From contig NW_026262581.1 of the NCBI RefSeq assembly GCF_021869535.1, forward strand, positions 16,678,001 through 16,742,000: 64,000 nt of DNA, given 5' to 3'. Source of the stretch: Mytilus californianus. Taxonomy: Eukaryota. This document shows, one piece after another, positions 49,801 to 64,000 of this stretch (position 1 is its first letter; the number at the start of each line of letters is the position of its first letter). Position numbers and translations under genes: made by a program. Under the pieces are notes generated by a model, which did no database searches, was not told the origin of the DNA, and worked only from the letters and a program-made list of their open reading frames with translations.

Positions 49801-50147
49801 ATGGCTACGATCGTTTATTTATTAATTTGCTTTCTCTTCGAGCACAAAGGAATAACAGCAAAGTATTCTCCTGACTGGGACTCATTAGATTCAAGACCGT
49901 TACCAGATTGGTATGACAAAGCCAAATTTGGAATCTTCCTTCATTGGGGAGTATTTTCTGTTCCAAGTTTTCATAATGAATGGTTTTGGCCACAATGGAA
50001 GTCGAGGCACCCAGCTCCTGATATAGTCAACTTCATGAAACATAATTACCGACCTGATTTTACCTATGCTGACTTTGCTGCAGATTTCACAGCAGAATTC
50101 TTTAATCCAGATGAATGGGCAGATATATTTAAAGCCTCGGGAGCAGG
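49801..50147 (+). CDS. FUCA: Fucosidase copy 1 exon 1
   Basis: MATIV...KASGAG, donor GTAAGT at 50148. Confidence 0.95.
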
Positions 50148-53100
50148 GTAAGTTTACATATTTTAATATCGCACACATGGAACTGTGGAAGGAGAACCTG
50201 ATCAATGTCCGTCTGTTCACCAGATTGTTAAGTTTAAGTATATTTTTGGCATATCAGTGCATGCTATATATATAATACTTAACCACTGCAGTCTTCTCGT
50301 ATAATATAACACAATTCTCGATGGTCAACTCAAGTTTTTGATAGATTTTATTGATGTTGCTTGCTATATGTCAAGCGAAAAATATTTCACAAATCTCCGG
50401 GATAAGAACAAATTAACAATAAATTAATTGATAGGTTCGACAGGTGGACACGTTCTGCCGATGAAGAGCGAAAAAAATGTTGACTGCTATTTTGATTTGA
50501 TTATGTAATTTGCTATTCGTAGTCATTCCTTAGAGCCTCTTATGCATATAGATATGTAAGCAACATCTCAGTTATGACCAACATCTTCGACTTGATTGAC
50601 TACAAGCTTGATTACGTTTATTTCTGAGAAACTCATGTGTGTTGTATGAATTAGTTTACATTGATATATACAATCACAATTGTTACAAAGACATTGGTTC
50701 TTCTTGAACTATATATCTCTTGTTACGTCTTGCTTAGAAAATATATATTTACAGATGCATTTGCAACACTTTTTAGATATGTTGTCCTGACCAGTAAACA
50801 CGGCGAAGGCTTTCCAAACTGGCCATCCAGCCATTCTTTCAACTGGAATGCAAAAGCAGTCGGACCTAACAGGGACCTTGTTGGTTAGTACATGTGCTAA
50901 GGATGAATCATTGGATTCCTTTTTCCAATATAACCTTTCATATACTTGGATTTGGACAATAGAAAAAAGATTGTATTCAGTTCATTAAAAAATAAATTGA
51001 AGTTGTCCTTATAGTTGATAAAACAGAAAATATGCTGTAGTTTATCCGTTTTGGTAGATAGAGTGAACATGCGAGCTTTTGACTAACATTTTGTAGATAG
51101 AGTGAACATGCGAGCTTTTGACTAACATTTGGTAGATAGAGTGAACATACCAGCTTTTGACAAACATTTTGTAGATAGAGTGAACATGCGATCTTTTGAC
51201 TAACATTTTGGTAGATAAAGTGAACATACGAGCTTTTGACTAACATTTTGGTAGATGGAGTGAACATGCGAGCTTTTGACTAACATTTTGGTAGATAGAG
51301 TGAACATGCGAGCTTTTGACTAACATTTTGGTAGATGGAGTGAACATGCGAGCTTTTGACTAACATTTTGGTAGATAGAGTGAACATGCGAGCTTTTGAC
51401 TAACATTTTGGTAGATAGAGTGAACATGCGATCTTTTGACTAACATTGTGGTAGATAGAGTGAACATGCGATCTTTTGACTAACATTTTGGTAGATAGAG
51501 TGAACATGCGAGCTTTTGACTAACATTTTTGGTAGATAGAGTGAACATGCGAGCTTTTAACTAACATTTTTGGTAGATAGAGTGAACATGCGAGCTTTTA
51601 ACTAACATTTTTGGTAGATAGAGTGAACATGCGAGCTTTTGACTAACATTTTGGTAGATAGAGTGAAAATGCGAGCTTTTGACAACATTTAAAACAATAC
51701 TTTTATTATATTAGCATTTATATATTTTAGTTTGATATTAACTATACAATCATTTTAGGAGACCTAGCTAATGCTATAAGGAATAAAACGGATATAAAGT
51801 TTGGTACATACTACTGTATATCCGAATGGCTTCATCCCTTGTATATGAAAGATAAGGCGAACAACTTCACTACACAAAGCTTTGTATTGGTAAGTTACGT
51901 AGTCTTAGTATTAATATAGTCATGTCCATAAACCGATTGGATGTACGTCATTGTGACAGCACGAAGACCAGAAGGACATCTAGAGGTCAACATACGGTAG
52001 TCAACAATAGACAAGTGTCTATACAATATATATAAAGCACAAAATCTCCTCAAGTCTAGAAACTGTCATCATCACCAAATTCTTTACAACACAAAAACAA
52101 ACTTTAGATATAAATAAAATAAAAAAGCATGATAGTTTATCACGTAAAACTTGAAAATCCATTGGCGTTTTAATTCTTATAATTTAGTTCATTAAAGGTT
52201 GCAAATAATTAAAAATTGTTTGTTAGTGCACATCTACGAGAAATTTTATGTATTCATCAAATTATAAATACCTTCTTTTCCGTTAAGACAAAGGCTTTAC
52301 CTGAACTATATGAACTTGTAAACAAGTACAAACCGGAGATATTATGGGCAGATCTGGCCGATGGTCAAGGACCAGCTTCTTACTACAAGTCTAAAGAATT
52401 CCTTGCCTGGTTGTATAATGACAGGTAAGGATTCAAAGCTGACCAATGATGTTGATGTTAAAACCAAACTGATTACCTGGCAATATGGAATTTAGAAATA
52501 TTTCAAATCTCAGTGGCACATTTTTCGACAGCAACTTGCCCATATGCGGTTCACGACCACCAATTATTCGCCAAAACCAATCTTAATTTTTCTCAATCTG
52601 ATTAAAATACATAGCATGGATACGCGCTTCGCTTACAAGAGATTTACAGAAAGTCTCGGTACCGACTATTTACACCAACTTCAACAGGAAAAATGAGTAA
52701 ACGATTTGCATTTCAAGGTAAAAGTTGCAAATACCTGTTAGAATAAAACAATAAACTGTCAAATACAATTTCACAAATCGTATCCCCCTTTTGTTAGCTC
52801 ATTGGGTCAATGGTATGTGAGTTAATGTCATGATCACTAGGCATCCGTTGTTGTCCGTTGTCTTTTCAGGCTTAAAAAGTATTTGAACCAAACTTAGTGT
52901 AAATGCCATTTAAAAAAACAATTCAGTACACCTATGCTAAAATTTGTATTTCTAATGAAAAACGTAGTTGTAAATATTTAAATGACAAATTGAAGCATTT
53001 ATGAGTCTTTAACTCAATAAACACGATTTATATCCATTTATATGAGATTAAAATATAATATTTAAGTAAGTTTTATACGTAATTTATGTGCATGCATGCA

Positions 53101-56100
53101 GTGTCAAGGTAACAAATTTCATATTATATTTTTTTGCTGGTTTTCTGATTGCCTTGAAATCTGCAAAATTAACTTTTTATACGCCCGTCAAATTTTTGAC
53201 GGGACGTATTATGGTATACAAATGACCGGCGTCCGTCCGTCTGTCTGTCCGTCTGTCCGTCTGTCTGTCCGGCGTAAACATGTCGCACCGTAACTTGAGA
53301 ACGACTTATCCAAATTTCATGAAACTTAACATAGTTGTTTCTCATGATGGTCAAACGATCTGTTTACTTTTTGGTGAAAATAAGATTAAAACTTTTTGAG
53401 TTACAGGACTTAGTAACTAAAACAGGTGTGTGTTTTTTTTCACATGTCGCGCCGTATCTCAAAAACAATTTTATGATTATTGCTTAAAACTTTACACACT
53501 TCTTAGTTATATTGACCTTAAGATCTGTATACTTTTTGGTGATGATTCAAAATTTTATTTTTGAGTTATTGAGTATTTTGTAAAAAAAGGGGGAGGGGTT
53601 TTTCACATGTCGCGCCGTATCTCAAAAACGATTTATGATTATTGCTTAAAATTTTACACACTTCTTAGTTATATTAATCTAAAGATCTGTATACTTTTTG
53701 GTTTTGATTCAAAATTTTATTTAAGAGATATTGAGTTTTTTGTAAAAAAAAAAGGGGGGGTTTTCGCATGTCACGCCGTATGTCAGAAACTATTTATGCT
53801 TATTGCATAAAAATTCACACACAATACGACGGGCGTATCATGCGCTCATGGCGCAGCTGTTTATTTAGAATGTTTATATTAACTCTAATGACAAATCACA
53901 GTTACTTTATTATTCTATGTAACACGTTTTTTTTAAACTAATTTCAATCGACGTTGATGAAATGCATGTCTATCTTCTTCTTCTTCTTCTTCCGGAAGTA
54001 GACTCCTAGGTAGGAGTGTTAAGCTTCCTGTAACCAATACTAGATCAACCGGTAAATTATTTCTTCTTTTGGATATGAAGCCTTTCAGTAATGATTTAAA
54101 AGCACAAAGATCCTAAAAATTGTGCACGGCACTTTTCTTTCATCACAGTGTAGAGAAAAAAATTCAAAAGCTCGAGTAAAAAATAAGTGCGTACCCTTTT
54201 GTCATGTCTATGCTGTTGCCAACAAATTTATAAATGACAACAATATTACACTTGTAAAAAGTGCAAATACATGTTGGAAACCAAGCCAGCAGAAGAAAAA
54301 CGTTATCACTGCAACAAATGGAGTATAATCATTTCACAACAGCATTCATAAATACAGAAATTTGTCTATATTGTTACTGTCTATCATGTTACGTTAGTTT
54401 AAGTAACAAGATAGACAACATAAAGAGGAGGGTTTAAAAATTGCAATTTCGACATTTTTTTTAAATGACCAAATTAGGAATGCTCTTTATCTGGTTCACT
54501 ACAAAATTTATATCTGACAGCTCTATCCAATTTAAAAAATGGCCACCAAAGCCTTTGAGCGGTCGACAAAAACTACGAATTAGATGGTAGAAATGTTTCT
54601 GGAATGATCATCACACATTTCGCAAATAGACACATGAAATAAGTAATTTTCATAGATGTGGTCAGGGGTAATATAAAAAAAACCAAATTACATGTCGTAT
54701 CTCAGCAGATAATGGACTGATTTAAACAATAGGAAACTGAGAAGAATTCACAGCATATTCAGACTTCGACAGAAAATGAACAAATACAAGTACATGTATA
54801 TAATATGATCCTTTCAAGTTTTATTAAAAAGTAAATTTTGTCACTTTTATCTCCGATTACAAACCATTGAAGAAATAATTACAAGTTTCATGTGCTTTTA
54901 ACCAGTTCCTTTTAATTTATTTAGATTACAATATTTTGACTCCAAAATTCATGTGTACGCCCGGTCGTTTTGACGTAAACGTAGCTACGCGCCTGTGCCC
55001 GTAAATTCACATTTGAGATAACTCGAATAATTCTGCGCCCTCTAGCGGCCTATAGCCTATCGGTTAATGTAGCAATCGGAGATTAGTCGGAGATCGGCGG
55101 AATATAACGACTGACATTATTCGGGTTACATTTGAGACGACCCCTTTCATTTACCTGTCAAAGTCAGTGTCAACAGTCGGTACCGAGACTTTAGGCGAGG
55201 CGAAGCGTTGGGACAGGATCTGTATTTTAATCAGATTGAATTTTTCTCGGTTGTAGTCCGAGTTGTGCCATCATTATTTAATCGCTTTCATTGAGATATA
55301 TCTAGTTCGATCAGTGATTAAGATGATGGTAAGCGTTTCCAACAGGGTCCTGCGAGTAAGATAGAAATGATATTCTTGGATTTTTTATTAGCAACAAAAT
55401 TACAGAATAATCATTATATGATCATCTATGCTTGGATTATAATGCCAATGCATTGGCTTCCAATGAAAAACTACTTCCTCTTTCAAAATGTTGCTTATCC
55501 ATCTTGACTGCCAAAAGAGTTAAGTGATTGTTCTTATTTATGCTAAATAAGTGAGCTCCCATACAAATTATTTAAAATATTTGTTAAAAACTTTGAAAAA
55601 AACGACGATCGTTTTGTTTACATTATTAGAACGTGTAAATATCGAATACATATAGTTACTAGTATACGTTTTTTTTTTTATAATTTGCGACGAAAATTAC
55701 ATCTACTGTGGAAATCAATGTGATATTATTCAAATTAAGGACCTTCACATATACTTTCATTGCAGTCCTGTGAAAGACAGTGTTGTCACAAATGACCGCT
55801 GGTGTCATGAATGTTTCTGTAAACATGGGGGATACAAGACCTGCAGAGATAAATGGAATCCTGGTTAGTAATGGAGAATTTTATAACATACTGTTAATTT
55901 TATAAAAGTTTAATGTACGTCAATTACACACATTTTTTTGGTCTTCAGAAAAGAAAGATTAGGCGGTCGAGGGTTATGGAGATTTAATCTAATGAATAGA
56001 GCAATGAATCCTCGATTCTATTAGAACATAGATGTTAACATGGTTAAGATAATGCTAAAGTTGAAATGTAAAAAAACGTTGGTGAGATATCAGATGTCTA

Positions 56101-58104
56101 TAGACTTGGTGGGACTAATTTGAGGAATATTGCCGGCATCAGTTTTGTTGTCGAGTTGTTTTGAAGCATGTTCCTACACTATATTTGCCATGGGTTAAAT
56201 TGATTTTATATATAATTGATCGGTGTTACATCAAAATTTTCGTGTCTTGAAATTGAATGAACATAAATATTTTTTGTTTGAAGGTAAACTGCAGAAATTT
56301 AAATGGGAAGATTGTATGTCGGTGGACAGGCATTCCTGGGGATACCGTAGAAATGCTCCTCTTGATTCATATCTAGATATAAACCAAATCATCTCAACGT
56401 TCGCATCAACAATCAGGTAAATACAAAATTGCAAATGACAAACAAAAGATTTGAAATTGAGGTTAAGTGTTAAAACTTTACCTAATCTCACCATATAGTA
56501 ATGCGCCTTGTCAAAACAAACCAGGAATATCGCCAGTCTTTAACCATATTTTATTTGTTTTGGGTTTTTTTTTGTCGATTGCCACTGATAAAAAACTTTT
56601 GTTCAGTACTTTTCTAGACTGGCGATTACGAGCTTGACAAATTAACTAGACATGTCTTTTGTTGACTGCTAGAGATCTTTTGACTCGTTTTTGTTTTTAG
56701 TTTGTTGTCTCATTGAAGTTTGATCCAACATCCCCCACATCTCCTTTTATTTACATTTTTTTAATTTGTATTTCATTTTGAATATATTGGAAAATCATGA
56801 GAAATTGATAAAAATTAGGATTTGTATTTTGATATGACTTTTATATTGGAAACATTCTATTTGTTCGGACTCGAGTCATCATAATTACATATCATTTCCA
56901 TATTTATACCCATGTTAGAAAAGAATGCTGACTGCAGTGGAAACATGCCAATGGTAGTCAAACGTTGTATTGCTATGCATACTGACTATGTATACTGACC
57001 ATGTTTACTGACCATGTTTACTGACTATGCTCGATTTTTTTTCAGTTGTGGTGGCAATATGCTGATGAATATTGGTCCAACGAAGGAGGGAACAATTATT
57101 CCAGTATTTGCGGAAAGATTACGACAGTTTGGAAGTTGGTTAAAAATAAATGGAGAAGGTGTTTACGGATCAGTACCTTGGAGCCACCAAAATGATTTCA
57201 CTACAAAAAATGTCTGGTAATGGTTTATATATTGCAAGAGTTTACCTGGTTTCTTGACCTATGTGTCATTTGAATATTTGTTTCAGTAGATTCAGGGTAA
57301 CATCATTGTTGAATTAAGAATGATATTAAAATATCACTTTTTATTTCTTTTTCAATATATACAGACTACCTTGGTTGTCTCACGGAAGCGTGTTGGCCTC
57401 AAGCACGGGAGGTCCTTTGTTCGATCCATTGCAGTGCCAAACCAAAAACTAAAATATTGGTATTTGCTGCTTCTCTGTCAAGCACACATCATTCGGGAGT
57501 AAGAGCAAAAACTAGCCAGCTCTGAGAAATAGGAGTCCGAGTATAAAGACATGTCTTCCTGCAGATTGATACCTTGTGATCTATCATGTTAAAAATTCGA
57601 CAATGACAGCGTGTCGGTCTAGGACAAATCATGGTTCATATTCACATTAACAGACATGAAATATTTGCCACTGGACATTGAACACATCCGTCATCACCTC
57701 ATCATCATCGTACAATTTTAATCTTCTATATTACTAATATTAGATTTTTTTTAATCGATTTTAACAATTATATTTAAAATTAAACTTATATATCAAAGAA
57801 TAAGTAAATATATTTTGTGATATACTGTCATATTTTGTAAAGGTACACGAAAAAGAAAACAGAAAATGATGGTACCATGGTATATGCAATAATGCTTACA
57901 TGGCCAGACGATTCTGTATTGGTATTGGGAGCACCAATACCTTCTCAATCTACACAAGTCACTATGCTTGGATATGAGGGAACAGTCAACTGGATATCAG
58001 GACCTGGTGGACAAGGGATGAATATTACCCTACAAAATATACCATGGAATAAGCTGCCTTCTCCATGGGCATGGGTGTTTAAGTTGACTTATATAACGAA
58101 CTAG
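49801..58104 (+). CDS. FUCA: Alpha-L-fucosidase-like (GH29) gene, 8 exons, 1386 nt, 461 aa, with signal peptide
   Basis: join(49801..50147,50777..50883,51759..51889,52288..52424,55766..55863,56284..56416,57046..57216,57843..58104). All introns are GT-AG and phases are compatible. Motifs: [57 protein letters not shown]. Co-orthologous to vertebrate FUCA1/FUCA2 (inference). Confidence 0.95.
50777..50883 (+). CDS. FUCA: Fucosidase copy 1 exon 2
   Basis: [17 protein letters not shown]...GPNRDLV, ttttAG acceptor and GTTAGT donor. Confidence 0.95.
51049..51690. repeat. 40-bp minisatellite, 16 copies, in intron 2
   Basis: Unit ttttggtagatagagtgaacatgcgagcttttgactaaca. Confidence 0.95.
51759..51889 (+). 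CDS. FUCA: Fucosidase copy 1 exon 3
   Basis: [28 protein letters not shown]...QSFVL, ttttAG acceptor and GTAAGT donor. Confidence 0.93.
52288..52424 (+). CDS. FUCA: Fucosidase copy 1 exon 4 (nucleophile Asp codon 52351-52353)
   Basis: [26 protein letters not shown]...FLAWLYND, donor GTAAGG. Confidence 0.93.
53177..53862 (+). mobile_element. Complete HINE-like element with ~162-bp repeats in intron 4
   Basis: Perfect subterminal IR atacgcccgtc (53179-53189) / gacgggcgtat (53828-53838), a (gtcy)n tract, repeats at 53441, 53604 and 53765, and the 3' hairpin tgcgc-tcatg-gcgca. Confidence 0.85.
55035..55048 (-). promoter_or_regulatory. CTCF-consensus motif in a CpG-rich intronic island (~54950-55370)
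   Basis: The minus strand reads CCGCTAGAGGGCGC, close to the CCRSYAGRKGGCRS core. Confidence 0.4.
55766..55863 (+). CDS. FUCA: Fucosidase copy 1 exon 5
   Basis: [32 protein letters not shown], ttgcAG acceptor and GTTAGT donor. Confidence 0.93.
56284..56416 (+). CDS. FUCA: Fucosidase copy 1 exon 6
   Basis: [24 protein letters not shown]...FASTI, donor GTAAAT. Confidence 0.92.
57046..57216 (+). CDS. FUCA: Fucosidase copy 1 exon 7
   Basis: [15 protein letters not shown]...[15 protein letters not shown]...NV, tttcAG acceptor and GTAATG donor. Confidence 0.94.
57385..57690 (+). mobile_element. tRNA-derived SINE in intron 7
   Basis: Head ...ggaggtcctttgttcgatcc, core ggtatttgctgcttctct...gagtaagagcaaa, and tail gaaatatttgccactggac. 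Same family as 59470-59793. Confidence 0.7.
57843..58104 (+). CDS. FUCA: Fucosidase copy 1 exon 8 (terminal)
   Basis: YTKKK...VYAIMLTWP...LGAP...VTMLGY...[12 protein letters not shown]. Confidence 0.93.
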
Positions 58105-59469
58105 GCTGTATGTTATGCATGATATATATATATATGCCCGGTATACCAGAAAGAGATTTGTCTAGTCTAGATGTTAAAGGCACACCATCATTCCAAAAAC
58201 ACTACAAGAAAGAGATTAATCTATATGTTAAAGGCACATAACATTCTCCAATGAAAATTATAATACGACAAACACACCTGTGTATTGCTCGACTGATAAA
58301 AGCATCATGTTTTTGCAATGTTTGAATTGTTTTGATTTTAGAACTATGTATTCATAAATTATGACTTAGATAAATATTTAAACAGTATTTCAAAAGGTGA
58401 TAGATTTGTCTTTATAATTGTTCAATGAACACATATTATGCATTGTGATTGTATCTCTGTATATATATATATATATATATATCTTTTTTTCCCTTACTTA
58501 TGAAAATATTTATGTGTATTTTTTTACTTTTTTATCAACATCTATTTATCTTCTATTTTCTTTATTTTATATTTACTATTGTTGTTACAGGAATAAACAA
58601 ATGAAACTTTTGATGAAAATACACAAAAAGTGCTCTCTACATATTTCATTGTAATTGATATGACTACTATTATTATTTATTTGTGGCAAAGATGGACATG
58701 AGACAACAACGTCAAGAAATAATTGGAAATAATTCAATAACAAAACAGATCTGTTAAAGGTGTTTAATATCCCGACAGCGTTCTAACGTCTGTAACTCAT
58801 TAGCTCACTGTCGGACGACAGAAAATACTGTCAACACAGACTACATGTTTGGCAGTGTTAAACCCATGCTGAGTGTGTGTGGGTGGTTCACTTGGTTTTG
58901 CGGTTTTATTAATATGCAGCCGCGTACATTCAGAATGGGGACGTTTAATTCCATGCCTTGTGTATCGAGAGAACCTCTCCATGTTACAAACCTTTGTTCA
59001 AACACTGAGGGATGTGCAGGCCTTTTGCAAAGCAAGTTTTCTGCATGTTTCTTTTTTTTCTAGTGATTGTCCAATTTCCAACCCTTCATCTCAGACGACC
59101 CAATTGGAAAAACCCTAAAATGTTCATATTTATCGATAATTTGTTGCTGTCCTGAATTATCCTTTGATACTTGCCACTGGACTAGAAGCAAGTAAAAATC
59201 GACCATCTTATCAACCTAGGGTTGATTTTCCACGAGATAGCAACCCATCAACACATATCTCCCAAAAATAGACACATAAAGGTAACTGTGTAGTCCGGCC
59301 ATACGAGTCAATAAACAAATTTATAATCTCCTCAATTCCAGGCAAGTTACGGGTTCAAAAGAGACAAAATGTATACAATAATTCTAAAAAAAATGGACAA
59401 ATAAGAAAAAGACACCGTGAATTATTTCAATGCACAATACTAGGATGCAGAAAATTGAAGAAGATGGAT

Positions 59470-59793
59470 GGCTGAATGAATGGTTGTTTAACGTCCAGTG
59501 GCAAATTAAATATTCGAGACCAGAACATGTTTGTGCGATATGAATTGAACCTTGCTTTATACTAGACCGACACGCTATGTCGGATTTTTAACGTACTAGT
59601 TCACAAGGTAACAGTCCACAGGAGGACATGTCGACCTACCCGGACACATTATTCTAACTCTGAGCCGACCAGTCCAAACTCTATCTCCTTAATGCGGCGT
59701 GCTTAGAGGAGAAGCAGCAAATACCAATTTTACAGTCTTTGGTTTGGCCCGGCCGGGGTTCGAACCAACAACCTCCCGTACAAGAGGCAAACA
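59470..59793 (-). mobile_element. tRNA-derived SINE
   Basis: Minus strand B-box ggttcgaacc, core attggtatttgctgcttctcctctaagcacgccgcattaagg, and tail ccactggacgttaaacaacc. Confidence 0.75.
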
Positions 59794-61157
59794 CACTACC
59801 ACCGATTGAAAAAGAAGAGAATTGCTTGTGATATATTAGCTCTTTTTTAGACTCATATGTTGCCTCTTCCAATGTAAATAGTAGGAGGTGTGGGGATTGT
59901 GGGCATGCGTCAATGAGACAGCAACCCAAATGAAACAAAAACAAAAGTAATCGATGTCAACAATGAACACAATATGTCAAAATCTCCCCTGGTCTAAACA
60001 AGATCTATTGTTTACTCAAATTTACATATTTGAAATGAAGGTAGATGTGGGGTATACATCAATGAGACAGTAATCCAATGATAACAACAATACAACTAGA
60101 AGGCAGTCTTCAACAATAGACGGGTGTCTTTACAATATGTAAAGCTGTACTGAATTCGTTCCGTTTCTATATAAAAAAATGAGAATAACACTTTTATAGA
60201 TTTGATGCATCCGATGTGCTTTTATAGATTTATAAAATTGTGAATAGATTTAATAGGATCAATTAAATATCTGCTCATACACTCAATTCTCCAAATAACT
60301 AAAACAGTTAGAGCGACTGACATGGTTCCTAGTTTGGAACATGCATGTTAAAATGTAGCGGGGTTAAAATATTTTTTTAGAGACCATCACATATTTTAAT
60401 CTCGACAAGAACATTAATTCACAAAACGTACACAAATATTAAACATACAAGAAAGATCAGTACAAGAAAAGCACTTCAATCTAAAATAACGGTATAATAG
60501 ATAACGCAATCAATAACAAAGTTTAACGTTTTAAACAATGCATACCGTTTTGAAATATGATTGTAGTGTAGTTACTACAAGCAATTGCAAGACCATAGGA
60601 CATCTTTACCAGGTCAAAGAAAAAATTATAAGTTTAAAGAAAGGACTCTTTTACAGGGACATGCATCTTTGAACTGATAATTGCTCAATTGTGTTTTGTT
60701 TTTTCTTTGACTTGTTAAACTCGTTTTCTAATTTCGAAATCTGCATTTGTTTGACAATAATCGCCGTGCATGCATAGGTGCGGATTAAGCCCCCCCCCCC
60801 CCTTTCACGAAACCAGACAGAAAGAAATGTAATTTACTGGTAAAATAATAGAAATAATAGTCATTATTTCTGTCAAAATACGGTCCCCTAATTCCTTTTG
60901 ATTTTGCCATTTTGATAAGGGACTTTCCGTTGTGAATTTCCTTGGAGTTCGGTATTTTTGTTATTTTACTAATTCTCAGGACCCATGTCACATGGTTGTA
61001 TTAAATAAAAATACAGTGAAACCAATGAGTATTCAATTGAACAAAATGCCTATTTATATCATCAGGTAGCTGTATTGCTTCGGTGCACAATCGATTTTAA
61101 AGCCTATAGAGCATATTTCTATACAAATCATGTGATACTGTTTTGATATTTTTCATA

Positions 61158-61498
61158 ATGGCCACGCTTCTTTATTTATTACTCTGTTATCTTTTCGTGT
61201 ACAAAGGAATAACAGCAAAGTATACTCCTGACTGGAACTCAATAGATTCAAGACCATTACCAGACTGGTATGACAAAGCTAAATTTGGAATCTTTATCAC
61301 TTGGGGTGTTTTTTCTGTTCCAAGTTTTCATAATGAATGGTTTTGGCCAAATTGGAAGCGAAGAGCTCCAGATATAGTCAACTTTATGAGACATAATTAC
61401 CGACCTGATTTTACCTATGCTGACTTTGCTGCAGATTTTACAGCAGAATTCTTTAATCCTGATGAATGGGCAGATATATTTAAAGCATCAGGAGCAGG
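61158..61498 (+). CDS. FUCA: Fucosidase-like copy 2 exon 1 (gene incomplete at window end)
   Basis: [13 protein letters not shown]...[23 protein letters not shown]...KASGAG, colinear with copy 1 except a 2-aa deletion. Donor GTAAGT at 61499. Confidence 0.93.
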
Positions 61499-61900
61499 GT
61501 AAGTTGCTTATTTTCATATCGCACCCGTGGAAGGCGAACCATATATATTGTTGTATGTGATATTGTCCGTAGGTTCAACAGATTGTTAATGTTTAGTTTT
61601 AAGTTATCGAGCCACAGTATGTTTGGCATGATATTAGTGCATGATATATAGTACTTCACAACTGCTGTCTTCTCGTATAGTATAACATAATTCTCCAAGT
61701 CTAAGTTTTTGATAGATTTTCTTGATGTTAAATTGTTGGTATGCCCAGTAACACATAAAAGTAAAGCGACGGGGATAAAGAGCGAAAAATGTGGACAGCC
61801 ATTTTAATTTGGTAAATCGGTTTTTGTGTTCATTCGAAAGAACCTCACATTCATATATTACTCGACTTACGAAAGCTATACTAGTATTTGTATAGCCTTG

Positions 61901-62316
61901 TTGGCCGAGTGGTGCACAGCACTGGTCATAATGCAGGCGGTAATTCCACGATGTCACAGAAGCAGGGGGATTTGAATCCCGCTTAGGGAAGAACAAAAAA
62001 TTTATTAACGCAAAGGGGGTATGTTTAGGGCCCTTTTCGACCTACAAAACTGAAGTATTACAAAAATAGGTAATTTTAGCTTTAAAATAATCGCTAAGTA
62101 TTTTTTTAAGAGTAATATATTTGAAATATCATAAATATTTACAGCGATTTTAGTGTGAAGATATCAAAATTTCAATATTTTTTTCCAAACGATACAACAT
62201 TCATATATTTTTCACACTTATTTGTTGGCCGAGTGGTCTTTGGCAGTGGTCATAGTGCAGGTGGTGTTGCCACGATGTCACAGAAGCTGGGCTTTGAATC
62301 CCACTGAGGGAAGAAC
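61901..62316 (+). mobile_element. Two tRNA-derived SINE heads (61901-62002, 62225-62316) in intron 1 of copy 2
   Basis: An A-box tggccgagtgg and a B-box-like tttgaatccc are each followed by a gggaagaac motif. No cloverleaf. Confidence 0.6.
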
Positions 62317-62381
62317 GACCCTCGCTACGTATTACTTAGAAGAAACATATTTAAACATATACATTCTCCAATACTTTTTAG

Positions 62382-62488
62382 ATATGTTGTCCTGACCACT
62401 AAACACGGTGAGGGCTATACAAACTGGCCATCGAGTCATTCATTCAACTGGAATTCAAAAGCAGTTGCACCTAACAGGGACCTTGTGG
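62382..62488 (+). CDS. FUCA: Fucosidase-like copy 2 exon 2
   Basis: [17 protein letters not shown]...APNRDLV, with the same length (107 nt) and splice sites as copy 1 exon 2. Confidence 0.93.
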
Positions 62489-62539: not shown

Positions 62540-64000
62540 AACATCTAAATAACACCCAATACTCATGTAACATCCAAATAACATCCAATACTCATGTTAC
62601 ATCCAAATAACATCCAAACATCCTATACTCATATTACATCCAAATTACATCCAAACATCCAATACTCATGTTACATCCAAATAACATCCAATACTCATGT
62701 TACATCCAAATAACATCCAAAACTCATGTTACATCCCAATAACATAAAAACATCCAATACTCCTGTTACATCCAAATTACATCCAATATTCATGTTACAT
62801 CCAAATAACATCCAAACATCCTACACTCATGTTACATCCAAATAACATCCAATACTCATGTTACACCAAAATAACATCCAATACTCATGTTACATCCAAA
62901 TAACATCCAATACTCATGTTACATGCAAATAACATCCAAACATCCAATACTCATGTTACATCCAAATAACATCAAAACATCCAATACTCATGTTACATCC
63001 AAATTACATCAAAAACTCATGTTACATCCAAATAACTTCCAAACATCCAATACTCCTGTTACATCCAAATTACATCCAATACTCATGTTACATCCAAATA
63101 ACATTCAAACATGCAATACTCCTGGTACATCCAAATTGCATCCAATACTCATATTACATCCAAATAACATCCAATACTCATGTTACATCAAAATAACATC
63201 CAATACTCATGTTACATCCAAATAACATCCAAACATCCAATACTCATGTTACATCCAAATAAAATCCAAACACTCAATTCTCATGTTACATCCAAATAAC
63301 ATCCAAACATCCAATACTCCTGTTACATCCAAATTACATCCAATACTCATGTGACATCCAAATTACATCCAATACTCATGTTACATCCAAATTACATCCA
63401 ATACTCATGTTACATCCAAATAACATCCAAACATGCAATACTCCTATTACATCCAAATTGCATCCAATACTCATGTTACATCCAAATAACATCCAATACT
63501 CATGTTACATCCAAATAACATCTAATACTCATGTTACATCCAAATAACATCCAAACATCCAATACTCATGTTACATCCAAATAACATCCAAACATCCAAT
63601 ACTCATGTTACATCCAAATTACATCAAAAACTCATGTTACATCCAAATAACATCAAAACATCCAATACTCCTGTTACATTCAAATTACATCCAATACTCA
63701 TGTTACATCCAAATTACATCCAATACTCATGTTACATTCAAATAACATCCAAACATGCAAATCTCCTGTTACATCCAAATTGCATCCAATACTCATGTTA
63801 CATCCAAATAACATCCAATACTCATGTTACATCAAAATAACATCCAATACTCATGTAACATCCAAATAACATCCAATACTCATGTAACATCAAAATAACA
63901 TCCAATACTCATGTTAAATCCAAATAACATGCAATACTCCTGTTACATCCAAATTGCATCCAATATTCATGTTACATCCAAATAACATCCAATACTCATG
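62540..64000. repeat. 29/37-bp minisatellite in intron 2 of copy 2, running past the window end
   Basis: Unit catccaatactcatgttacatccaaataa with an optional extra catccaaa. The top strand is nearly G-free. Confidence 0.95.

Follow-up and report, generated by a model that had tools for sequence, protein, structure and literature searches.

The fucose pocket of GH29 enzymes is usually treated as fixed, and structural papers list a His-His pair among its conserved ligands. The human FucA1 gene has eight coding exons, the same number as the mussel gene described here as copy 1, and the two proteins share 53% identity. In FucA1 (PDB 7PLS/7PM4), which belongs to GH29 subfamily A, Asp276 is the true acid/base and Glu289 braces its loop (PMC9548408). 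An assignment of Glu289 as the human acid/base was dropped, since the cryo-EM work shows Asp276 (PMC9548408). The second His of the pair is the hydrogen-bond partner of O2 (table in PMC11796335; PMC7718225).

A remodelled -1 pocket of the GH29 fold that alters the accepted L-sugar has a precedent in BpGH29 (7LNP, an exo-alpha-L-galactosidase) and ClAgl29A/B (7XSF and 7XSH, alpha-L-glucosidases). These proteins are among the structural matches of copy 1, but they are bacterial, have 23-28% identity, and their changes are at C6/C4 and not at O2. BpGH29 also retains the HH pair, unlike copy 1. In the nematode KHV/KHC paralogs (Toxocara canis P0087, Plectus sambesii P0270, Ditylenchus destructor P0110) the His was lost independently and the catalytic residues are kept, and P. 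sambesii P0270 has YYC as in copy 1. However, the replacement residue is a different one, there is no loop insertion and the lineages are distant. The canonical KHH paralogs (Pecten maximus P0225; M. californianus P0327 and P0424) are of the same family and length, with about 58-65% identity. They retain KHH, YHS and WSD-GDW, unlike the KHG clade to which copy 1 belongs. P0424 and its orthologs lie within the same gene cluster as the KHG clade.

A complete and expressed GH29 gene

The window, i.e. the whole stretch of Mytilus californianus DNA that was analysed (64,000 nucleotides), had been described in a sequence-only reading as holding tandem GH29 paralogs. Both copies share KHGEG, but only exons 1-2 of copy 2 are inside the window, and its exons 3-6 are found past the window end (64000), see Table 1.

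Table 1. Location of the two gene copies, their active-site codons and the adjacent satellite
Feature	Position	Strand	Remarks
Copy 1, GH29-A alpha-L-fucosidase-like gene, complete	49801..58104	+	461 aa, 8 coding exons
Copy 1 exons 1-4	49801-50147, 50777-50883, 51759-51889, 52288-52424	+	
Copy 1 exons 5-8	55766-55863, 56284-56416, 57046-57216, 57843-58104	+	stop included
His48 of LHWG	49942..49944	+	retained in copy 1; the O4 ligand, human His58
His124-Gly125 (KHGEG)	50799..50804	+	CAC GGC; Gly in place of the O2-binding His (human His134, Thermotoga His129)
Cys171 of YYC	51815..51817	+	replaces the YHS Ser, near-invariant where His134 is kept
Asp217, catalytic nucleophile (WAD)	52351..52353	+	followed by the remodelled loop LADGQ, one-residue insertion
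Asp269 (CRDK)	55848..55850	+	aligns with human acid/base Asp276 (CEDK of 7PLS)
Glu282 (KWE)	56307..56309	+	aligns with human Glu289, brace of the acid/base loop
Copy 2 exon 1	61158..61498	+	6-nt in-frame deletion relative to copy 1
Copy 2 Thr48, in place of the HWG His	61299-61301	+	
Copy 2 exon 2, KHGEG	62382..62488	+	CAC GGT at 62404-62409, Gly codon GGT 62407-62409
29-bp satellite	62541..64000	none	higher-order period about 293-322 bp; fills copy 2 intron 2 and continues past the window

Copy 1 is a real, spliced and expressed gene. In the spliced model every junction is GT/AG, and the exon peptides match, in order, positions 11-345 of PF01120 and then positions 11-88 of PF16757, with best E-values of 1.8e-36 and 8.3e-20; the catalytic and the C-terminal domain profiles of GH29 are thus both present. 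The protein is 100% identical to P0374, which is RefSeq XP_052059637.1 of M. californianus. Junctions 2-3, 3-4, 4-5 and 5-6 are found in raw RNA reads and also in RNA contigs from three further runs, and the reads over 50799..50804 show no alternative letter.

The AF2 model of copy 1 has a pLDDT of 90 and a pTM of 0.89, and the acid/base loop is its least confident part (pLDDT 70-74). It consists of a (beta/alpha)8 barrel and a C-terminal beta-sandwich. The best structural match is human FucA1 (7PLS), with a TM-score of 0.90/0.96 and an rmsd of 1.7 A.

Active-site residues

We scored ten ligands of the -1 subsite, in human numbering His58, His133, His134, Glu70, Trp71, Tyr177, Trp223, Trp299, Phe56 and Arg259. 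Copy 1 retains nine out of ten, and the set is incomplete at His134, which is Gly125. The retained Trp61 (human Trp71) is a second O2 contact. Further differences from FucA1 are His178-Ser179 to Tyr-Cys and Ser224 to Ala. Past the nucleophile, the loop has one additional residue and is without the Trp of GEW. In comparison with six mollusc GH29 proteins, copy 1 has WADLADG for WSD-GDWE, again with one additional residue. NDRWC replaces NDRWG and YYC replaces YHS relative to both these proteins and FucA1.

The catalytic residues Asp225, Asp276 and Glu289 of FucA1 are common to copy 1, which therefore has the animal-type acid/base Asp with its bracing Glu. In an alignment of 60 sequences that includes the clade, all have the nucleophile Asp, and conservation reaches at least 90% for both the acid/base Asp and the Glu that braces its loop.

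The residue-level statements of the sequence-only reading are confirmed. Reading the codons confirmed KHGEG in both copies (Gly codons GGC at 50802-50804 and GGT at 62407-62409). The Asp residues of WAD at 52351 and CRDK at 55848 are retained in the spliced model, and the pairing of the latter with the human acid/base agrees with the published Asp276 (PMC9548408). The contact of the second His with O2 is borne out by the papers cited above, and the loop, NDRWC and YYC differences were all seen again.

Rarity and repeated loss of the O2 ligand

In one alignment, 192 out of 203 full-length animal GH29 proteins have KHH/HH. The insect query P0051 returned only generic animal FUCA and served as an unbiased background; among the proteins from this search and a few cluster mates, 137 out of 138 motif matches are KHH. 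Exon 1 alone as a query gave mostly single-exon fragments, with about 40 proteins extending to the motif, and a profile from an alignment with two full-length rows brought Mytilus relatives among the top matches. KHG is rare in animal GH29, but replacement of this His is no peculiarity of the two copies: it characterises an entire Mytilus clade, and Cys, Ala or Val is found at the position in other molluscs and nematodes.

A tree of 255 proteins places at least seven losses of the His among animal GH29 proteins, and these fall in molluscs and nematodes. The Ser of YHS is also lost in five out of seven independent pairs and the reverse is seen in none (five informative pairs, sign test p = 0.06). 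Since the same His and the same Ser are lost repeatedly, this looks like directed remodelling.

The Mytilus clade and selection

The KHG subtypes and the sister KHC paralog form a Mytilus-specific, tandemly expanded clade. The group of P0296 (KHC), P0293, copy 1/P0286 and P0290/P0291 has an SH-aLRT of 99. All four paralog types share a contig or chromosome in each of M. trossulus, M. galloprovincialis, M. edulis and M. coruscus; the KHC type of M. californianus is P0411, a tentative placement.

A mollusc phylogeny with dN/dS was a check proposed with the sequence-only reading. Among the copy 1 orthologs of M. californianus, M. galloprovincialis and M. trossulus, dN/dS is 0.058-0.094 at a dS of 0.19-0.28, and 13 out of 13 active-site positions are identical in the three species. 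The Gly codon varies between GGC and GGT, while the Gly itself is constant, and it is retained across about 27% protein divergence between subtypes. Judged by these substitution patterns, the His to Gly change in copy 1 is maintained under strong purifying selection. The earlier claim that the change is maintained in the pair stands for copy 1 (dN/dS 0.06-0.09 and both Gly codons across species), but not for copy 2, which has a frameshift and is a probable pseudogene.

An ordinary fucosidase would be an alternative explanation: the His to Gly change and those that accompany it would be compensated, a silent drift in a redundant multigene family, and these paralogs would cleave unmodified alpha-L-fucosides just as canonical FUCA does. 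The retained Trp61 also hydrogen-bonds O2 and a water could likewise compensate; the remaining listed pocket and catalytic residues are all in place, canonical KHH paralogs in Mytilus provide the redundancy, and the variety of residues observed (G, C, A, V, F) indicates a tolerant position. We consider this doubtful, although a real possibility, as silent drift agrees poorly with a Gly held over the divergence of the subtypes, a dN/dS below 0.1, the repeated joint loss of His and Ser, and a His that is otherwise nearly invariant in animals.

Other ligands are missing in the sister subtypes. Besides the O2 ligand, the P0290 type has lost the O4 ligand (His58 to Thr), and P0385/P0395 the O3 ligand (Glu70 to Ala). 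The P0290 type reads KHGGG and TWG, and the P0385 type GAWFW. Both catalytic Asp residues are retained in every Mytilus paralog examined. The losses of the O4 or O3 ligand suggest that the paralogs, as a set, are adapted to fucose with different decorations. They would also fit a pseudoenzyme, i.e. a non-catalytic fucose binder or a repurposed protein, for example lectin-like as proposed for bivalve and ascidian sperm fucosidases; a sugar-binding ligand is gone in copy 1 too, and roles of fucosidases in mollusc gamete interaction are cited in PMC6718869. Such a protein is very improbable here, given the conservation of the nucleophile, the acid/base Asp and the Glu across the 60 sequences, and both Asp residues throughout the Mytilus paralogs. 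Fewer binding contacts are, moreover, the opposite of what a lectin requires.

The second copy

Copy 2 has neither of two ligands, His58 (Thr) and His134 (Gly). The Gly is common to both copies by descent from the duplication and is not an independent change. A 1-bp deletion in exon 5, beyond the window, shifts the frame. In the M. coruscus ortholog, exon 6 has independently lost 11 bp, and the gene is annotated as two separate models. No gene is called at copy 2 in the annotation of the M. californianus assembly, and the gene calls of M. trossulus and M. galloprovincialis include no copy 2 on the downstream side of their copy 1 orthologs. From these lesions copy 2 is probably a pseudogene, a decaying copy.

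Each lesion is known from one assembly, so that an assembly error is possible, and the exon 5 lesion concerns one G out of five consecutive ones. Copy 2 is also transcribed, with exons 3-4 correctly spliced in RNA, and its dN/dS of 0.20-0.25 between M. californianus and M. coruscus (exons 1-4) is not neutral. RNA contig 10 of X16 does not have the exon 5 gap and has three differences, but it matches the letters of copy 2 poorly. Two intact and functional tandem genes, with the frameshift as an error in the G homopolymer, are therefore a serious alternative, yet an unlikely one, as neither the missing gene calls in the three species nor the separate lesion in M. coruscus would be expected.

The satellite region that follows exon 2 of copy 2 shows a strong negative GC skew.

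Possible function and significance

Beyond the observed gene structure, expression, residue states, clade membership, selective constraint and fold, we infer with moderate confidence that copy 1 is a functional GH29-A fucosidase, active and with a changed substrate, whose pocket is altered around fucose C2. It would be a retaining alpha-L-fucosidase, secreted or lysosomal, of a Mytilus-specific tandem clade. The double-displacement machinery (Asp217, Asp269 and Glu282) is intact, and the C6 pocket, the ligands of O3/O4 and the other listed pocket residues are kept as well, while the -1 pocket would have been rebuilt at C2 by the change of the O2 His to Gly and its partner Ser to Cys, the additional loop residue and the loss of a Trp. 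The most likely consequence would be a wider and less polar space at O2, with a specificity that is relaxed or shifted there. A changed specificity at fucose C2, for O-methyl or O-sulfate, is plausible. Copy 2 would be a younger duplicate of copy 1 in which the O4-binding His was also lost, transcribed yet disrupted in frame.

Fucose with O-methyl or O-sulfate groups is known from the glycans of bivalves and nematodes and from algal fucans. A bolder and rather unlikely idea is that the fucosidases of the KHG clade serve as a toolkit for decorated fucose, in which every subtype is without the partner of a different hydroxyl and so has room for O-methyl or O-sulfate. The copy 1 type would be without the O2 partner, the P0290 type and copy 2 without those of O2 and O4, and P0385/P0395 without those of O2 and O3. 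Mussels might then trim their own methylated-fucose glycans or sulfated fucans from an algal diet. The same loss of His134 and Ser179 would have arisen independently in other molluscs and in nematodes, including Toxocara, which makes 2-O-methyl-fucose. In one survey (PMC8492980), Toxocara canis and T. cati were the only animals with this sugar, and it is reported separately for C. elegans.

In the literature on Mytilus GH29, or on 2-O-methyl-fucose with fucosidase, we found no description of this variant, and likewise no biochemical report on the KHG clade and no glycosidase described for O-methylated or O-sulfated fucose. The clade is a constrained, expressed and lineage-expanded animal group without the O2 ligand, with relatives without the O4 or O3 ligand, that has kept the catalytic machinery. 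If the enzymes are ordinary, this His would be dispensable. Should O-methylated or O-sulfated fucose be their substrate, they would close a gap and may become useful tools for glycan analysis, and a toolkit for decorated fucose would be the first GH29 specificity set by a substituent on the fucose ring.

Gene structure and expression of copy 1

The eight exons of copy 1 were derived from stop-to-stop translation and GT/AG boundaries. Their peptides match, in order, positions 11-345 of Pfam Alpha_L_fucos followed by Fucosidase_C, and the spliced product of 461 aa is 100% identical to XP_052059637.1 (P0374 in our protein set), the M. californianus 'alpha-L-fucosidase-like', i.e. the gene model obtained here is the RefSeq model. 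The sequence-only reading had placed the His-Gly codon pairs of both copies exactly, and its WAD and CRDK positions in copy 1 match the spliced model.

Features of the two GH29 copies, in window coordinates
Feature	Position	Strand	Basis or remark
Copy 1 exon 1	49801-50147	+	translation, GT/AG
Copy 1 exon 2	50777-50883	+	translation, GT/AG
Copy 1 exon 3	51759-51889	+	translation, GT/AG
Copy 1 exon 4	52288-52424	+	translation, GT/AG
Copy 1 exon 5	55766-55863	+	translation, GT/AG
Copy 1 exon 6	56284-56416	+	translation, GT/AG
Copy 1 exon 7	57046-57216	+	translation, GT/AG
Copy 1 exon 8	57843-58104	+	translation, GT/AG
Copy 1 His-Gly of K-H-G-E-G	50799-50804		CAC GGC
Copy 1 Asp217 (WAD)	starts 52351	+	spliced model
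Copy 1 Asp269 (CRDK)	starts 55848	+	spliced model
Copy 2 exon 1	61158-61498	+	inside window
Copy 2 exon 2	62382-62488	+	inside window
Copy 2 Thr at HWG His position	61299-61301		
Copy 2 His-Gly of K-H-G-E-G	62404-62409		CAC GGT
29-bp satellite	62541-64000, on to about 64600		copy 2 intron 2; L001 to about 24800
Copy 2 exon 5	about 66556-66652		beyond window; L001 26756-26852

Four RNA runs, one consisting of raw stranded RNA-seq reads, were compared with 50700-56699. Depth is confined to exons, except in intron 4, where dispersed repeats at 53100-53900 and ~54900-55300 are covered too. The junctions 50883/51759, 51889/52288, 52424/55766 and 55863/56284, joining exons 2-6, are each covered by 10-24 raw reads and are also present in contigs of two or three other runs, while loose RNA ends reach on into exons 1 and 7. 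No alternative letters were reported in exon 2 in these runs, so the transcripts carry the Gly codon of the genomic sequence. At 53100-53900 the depth is hundreds to thousands in all four runs, against 10-90 on exons, with many variant letters and loose ends; this stretch looks like a dispersed repeat that is transcribed (a SINE or another transposable element) and not like a part of the gene.

Active site and selection

In human FucA1 numbering (PDB 7PLS), the second His of the KHH motif, His134 (His129 in Thermotoga), forms the O2 hydrogen bond, the first, His133, binds O4/O3, the HWG His58 binds O4, Glu70 binds O3 and Trp71 both O2 and O3 (PMC11796335). The AlfC structure gives His88 the same O2 role as His134 (PMC7718225). 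According to the FucA1 cryo-EM structure, the real acid/base is Asp276 in C-E-D-K, and Glu289 merely braces the loop (PMC9548408). The CRDK Asp of copy 1 aligns with Asp276 in the HMMER alignment of exon 5 with 7PLS. Among the listed residues the only difference is the O2 ligand, His134 in FucA1 but Gly125 in copy 1; all others are common to both. The AlphaFold2 model of copy 1 has a mean pLDDT of 90 and superposes on 7PLS with TM-scores of 0.90/0.96 and an rmsd of 1.7 Å. The best reading of copy 1 from its sequence is a predicted active enzyme of GH29-A whose O2 region has been remodelled; alternatively, catalysis may have been lost.

The exchange of His for Gly may also be silent compensated drift. 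The loci of M. galloprovincialis and M. trossulus were used to rebuild the ortholog coding sequences (translations identical to P0378 and P0286). The copy 1 orthologs show dN/dS of 0.058-0.094 at dS 0.19-0.28. The three species agree at all 13 active-site positions, with Gly encoded by GGC in one of them and by GGT in the other two. The earlier argument from synonymous codons, that the glycine is maintained, therefore holds on better data, given the low dN/dS and the GGC/GGT variation.

Frequency of the histidine loss

KHH is found in 137 of 138 motif matches among proteins retrieved with an insect query and a few cluster mates, and the HH pair in 192 of 203 full-length sequences of one alignment. 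The choice of queries biases such protein surveys. The rarity of KHG, which was to be judged by alignment, is borne out: KHG is uncommon and, among the surveyed proteins with a taxon name, occurs only in Mytilus. The other exceptions are KHC (other Mytilus paralogs, Haliotis, Aplysia, Ditylenchus), KHA (one relative), KHV (Plectus; Toxocara/Ascaris) and KHF (Macrobrachium). A tree of 255 proteins shows at least seven losses of the His. An oyster paralog (P0441, Saccostrea echinata) has both histidines replaced, ITKQPEGF.

At position 171 (copy 1 numbering), 214 of the 215 proteins with His134 carry the Ser of Y-H-S, and 36 of the 38 without His134 have another residue there, the replacements being Cys or Val. 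Ser is lost with His in five of seven phylogenetically independent contrasts and the reverse occurs in none (sign test p = 0.06, the best reachable with five informative pairs). We infer from these sequences that this Ser and His134 act as a unit, and the pocket would turn less polar when Ser and His are lost.

Mytilus paralogs

In the maximum-likelihood tree, copy 1 groups with the ortholog from M. trossulus, to which it is 94% identical. Both nest in a Mytilus-only group (SH-aLRT 99, the tree being rooted on a non-monophyletic outgroup) that also contains one KHG Logan protein, the P0290/P0291 type and, as the sister paralog of its KHG members, P0296 with KHC. According to cluster look-ups, every type has orthologs in M. 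edulis, M. galloprovincialis, M. trossulus, M. californianus and M. coruscus, and the paralog types share one contig or chromosome in most of the five. In M. coruscus at least three genes of the copy 1 type stand in tandem, with a rhodanese gene after them.

The pocket differs among the KHG subtypes, and both catalytic Asp are kept in all of them. Besides the copy 1 type and a WADMVDD type, there is a subtype with Glu70 also changed to Ala (P0385 from M. trossulus, P0395 from M. galloprovincialis), in which SEWFW has become GAWFW, replacing the O3-binding Glu, and NDRW has become NDRF. In the P0290 type, KHGGG with many copies, Thr replaces the O4-binding His58. Ligands of different hydroxyls are thus lost in different paralogs.

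Copy 2

Exons 1-2 of copy 2 share 86% protein identity with copy 1. Intron 2 is filled by a satellite of 29-bp units with the consensus AACATCCAATACTCATGTTACATCCAAAT and a higher-order period of 293-322 bp; the satellite is the cause of the strongly negative GC skew at the window end. Exons 3-6 were found downstream in L001, the longer M. californianus locus. Exon 5 is 97 nt against 98, one G being gone from a run of five (CATGGGGGATAC), and the frame shifts just ahead of the acid/base Asp; this lesion may be an assembly error. The M. coruscus ortholog has independently lost 11 bp in exon 6 (L004 22930-23051), and the annotation splits it into two gene models of 298 and 156 aa. Over exons 1-4, dN/dS of copy 2 is 0.20-0.25. 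Of the proposed tandem GH29 pair, KHGEG stands in both copies, but the frame of copy 2 is disrupted and the M. californianus assembly has no called gene there. From its sequence, copy 2 is read as a duplicate that was disabled not long ago.

Where RNA reads differ from copy 1 in exon 4 (52323, 52326, 52335, 52356, 52366), their letters are exactly those of copy 2 in all five cases, showing that copy 2 is transcribed. With a threshold of 95%, its reads align to copy 1 (window 51838 and 52323-52366), where they could pass for alleles or editing.

Possible substrate of copy 1

The literature searched on Mytilus GH29 and 2-O-methyl-fucose fucosidases contained no description of the KHG variant. 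In two oyster species about a quarter of the fucose is 3-O- or 4-O-methylated (PMC10301044). Among animals, one survey lists 2-O-methyl-fucose in Toxocara canis and T. cati only, and another report adds C. elegans (PMC8492980); Toxocara is one lineage that has lost the same His as copy 1. Because of these literature correlations, the O-methylated fucose of oysters and the 2-O-methyl-fucose of Toxocara, O-substituted fucose would be a reasonable candidate substrate of copy 1.
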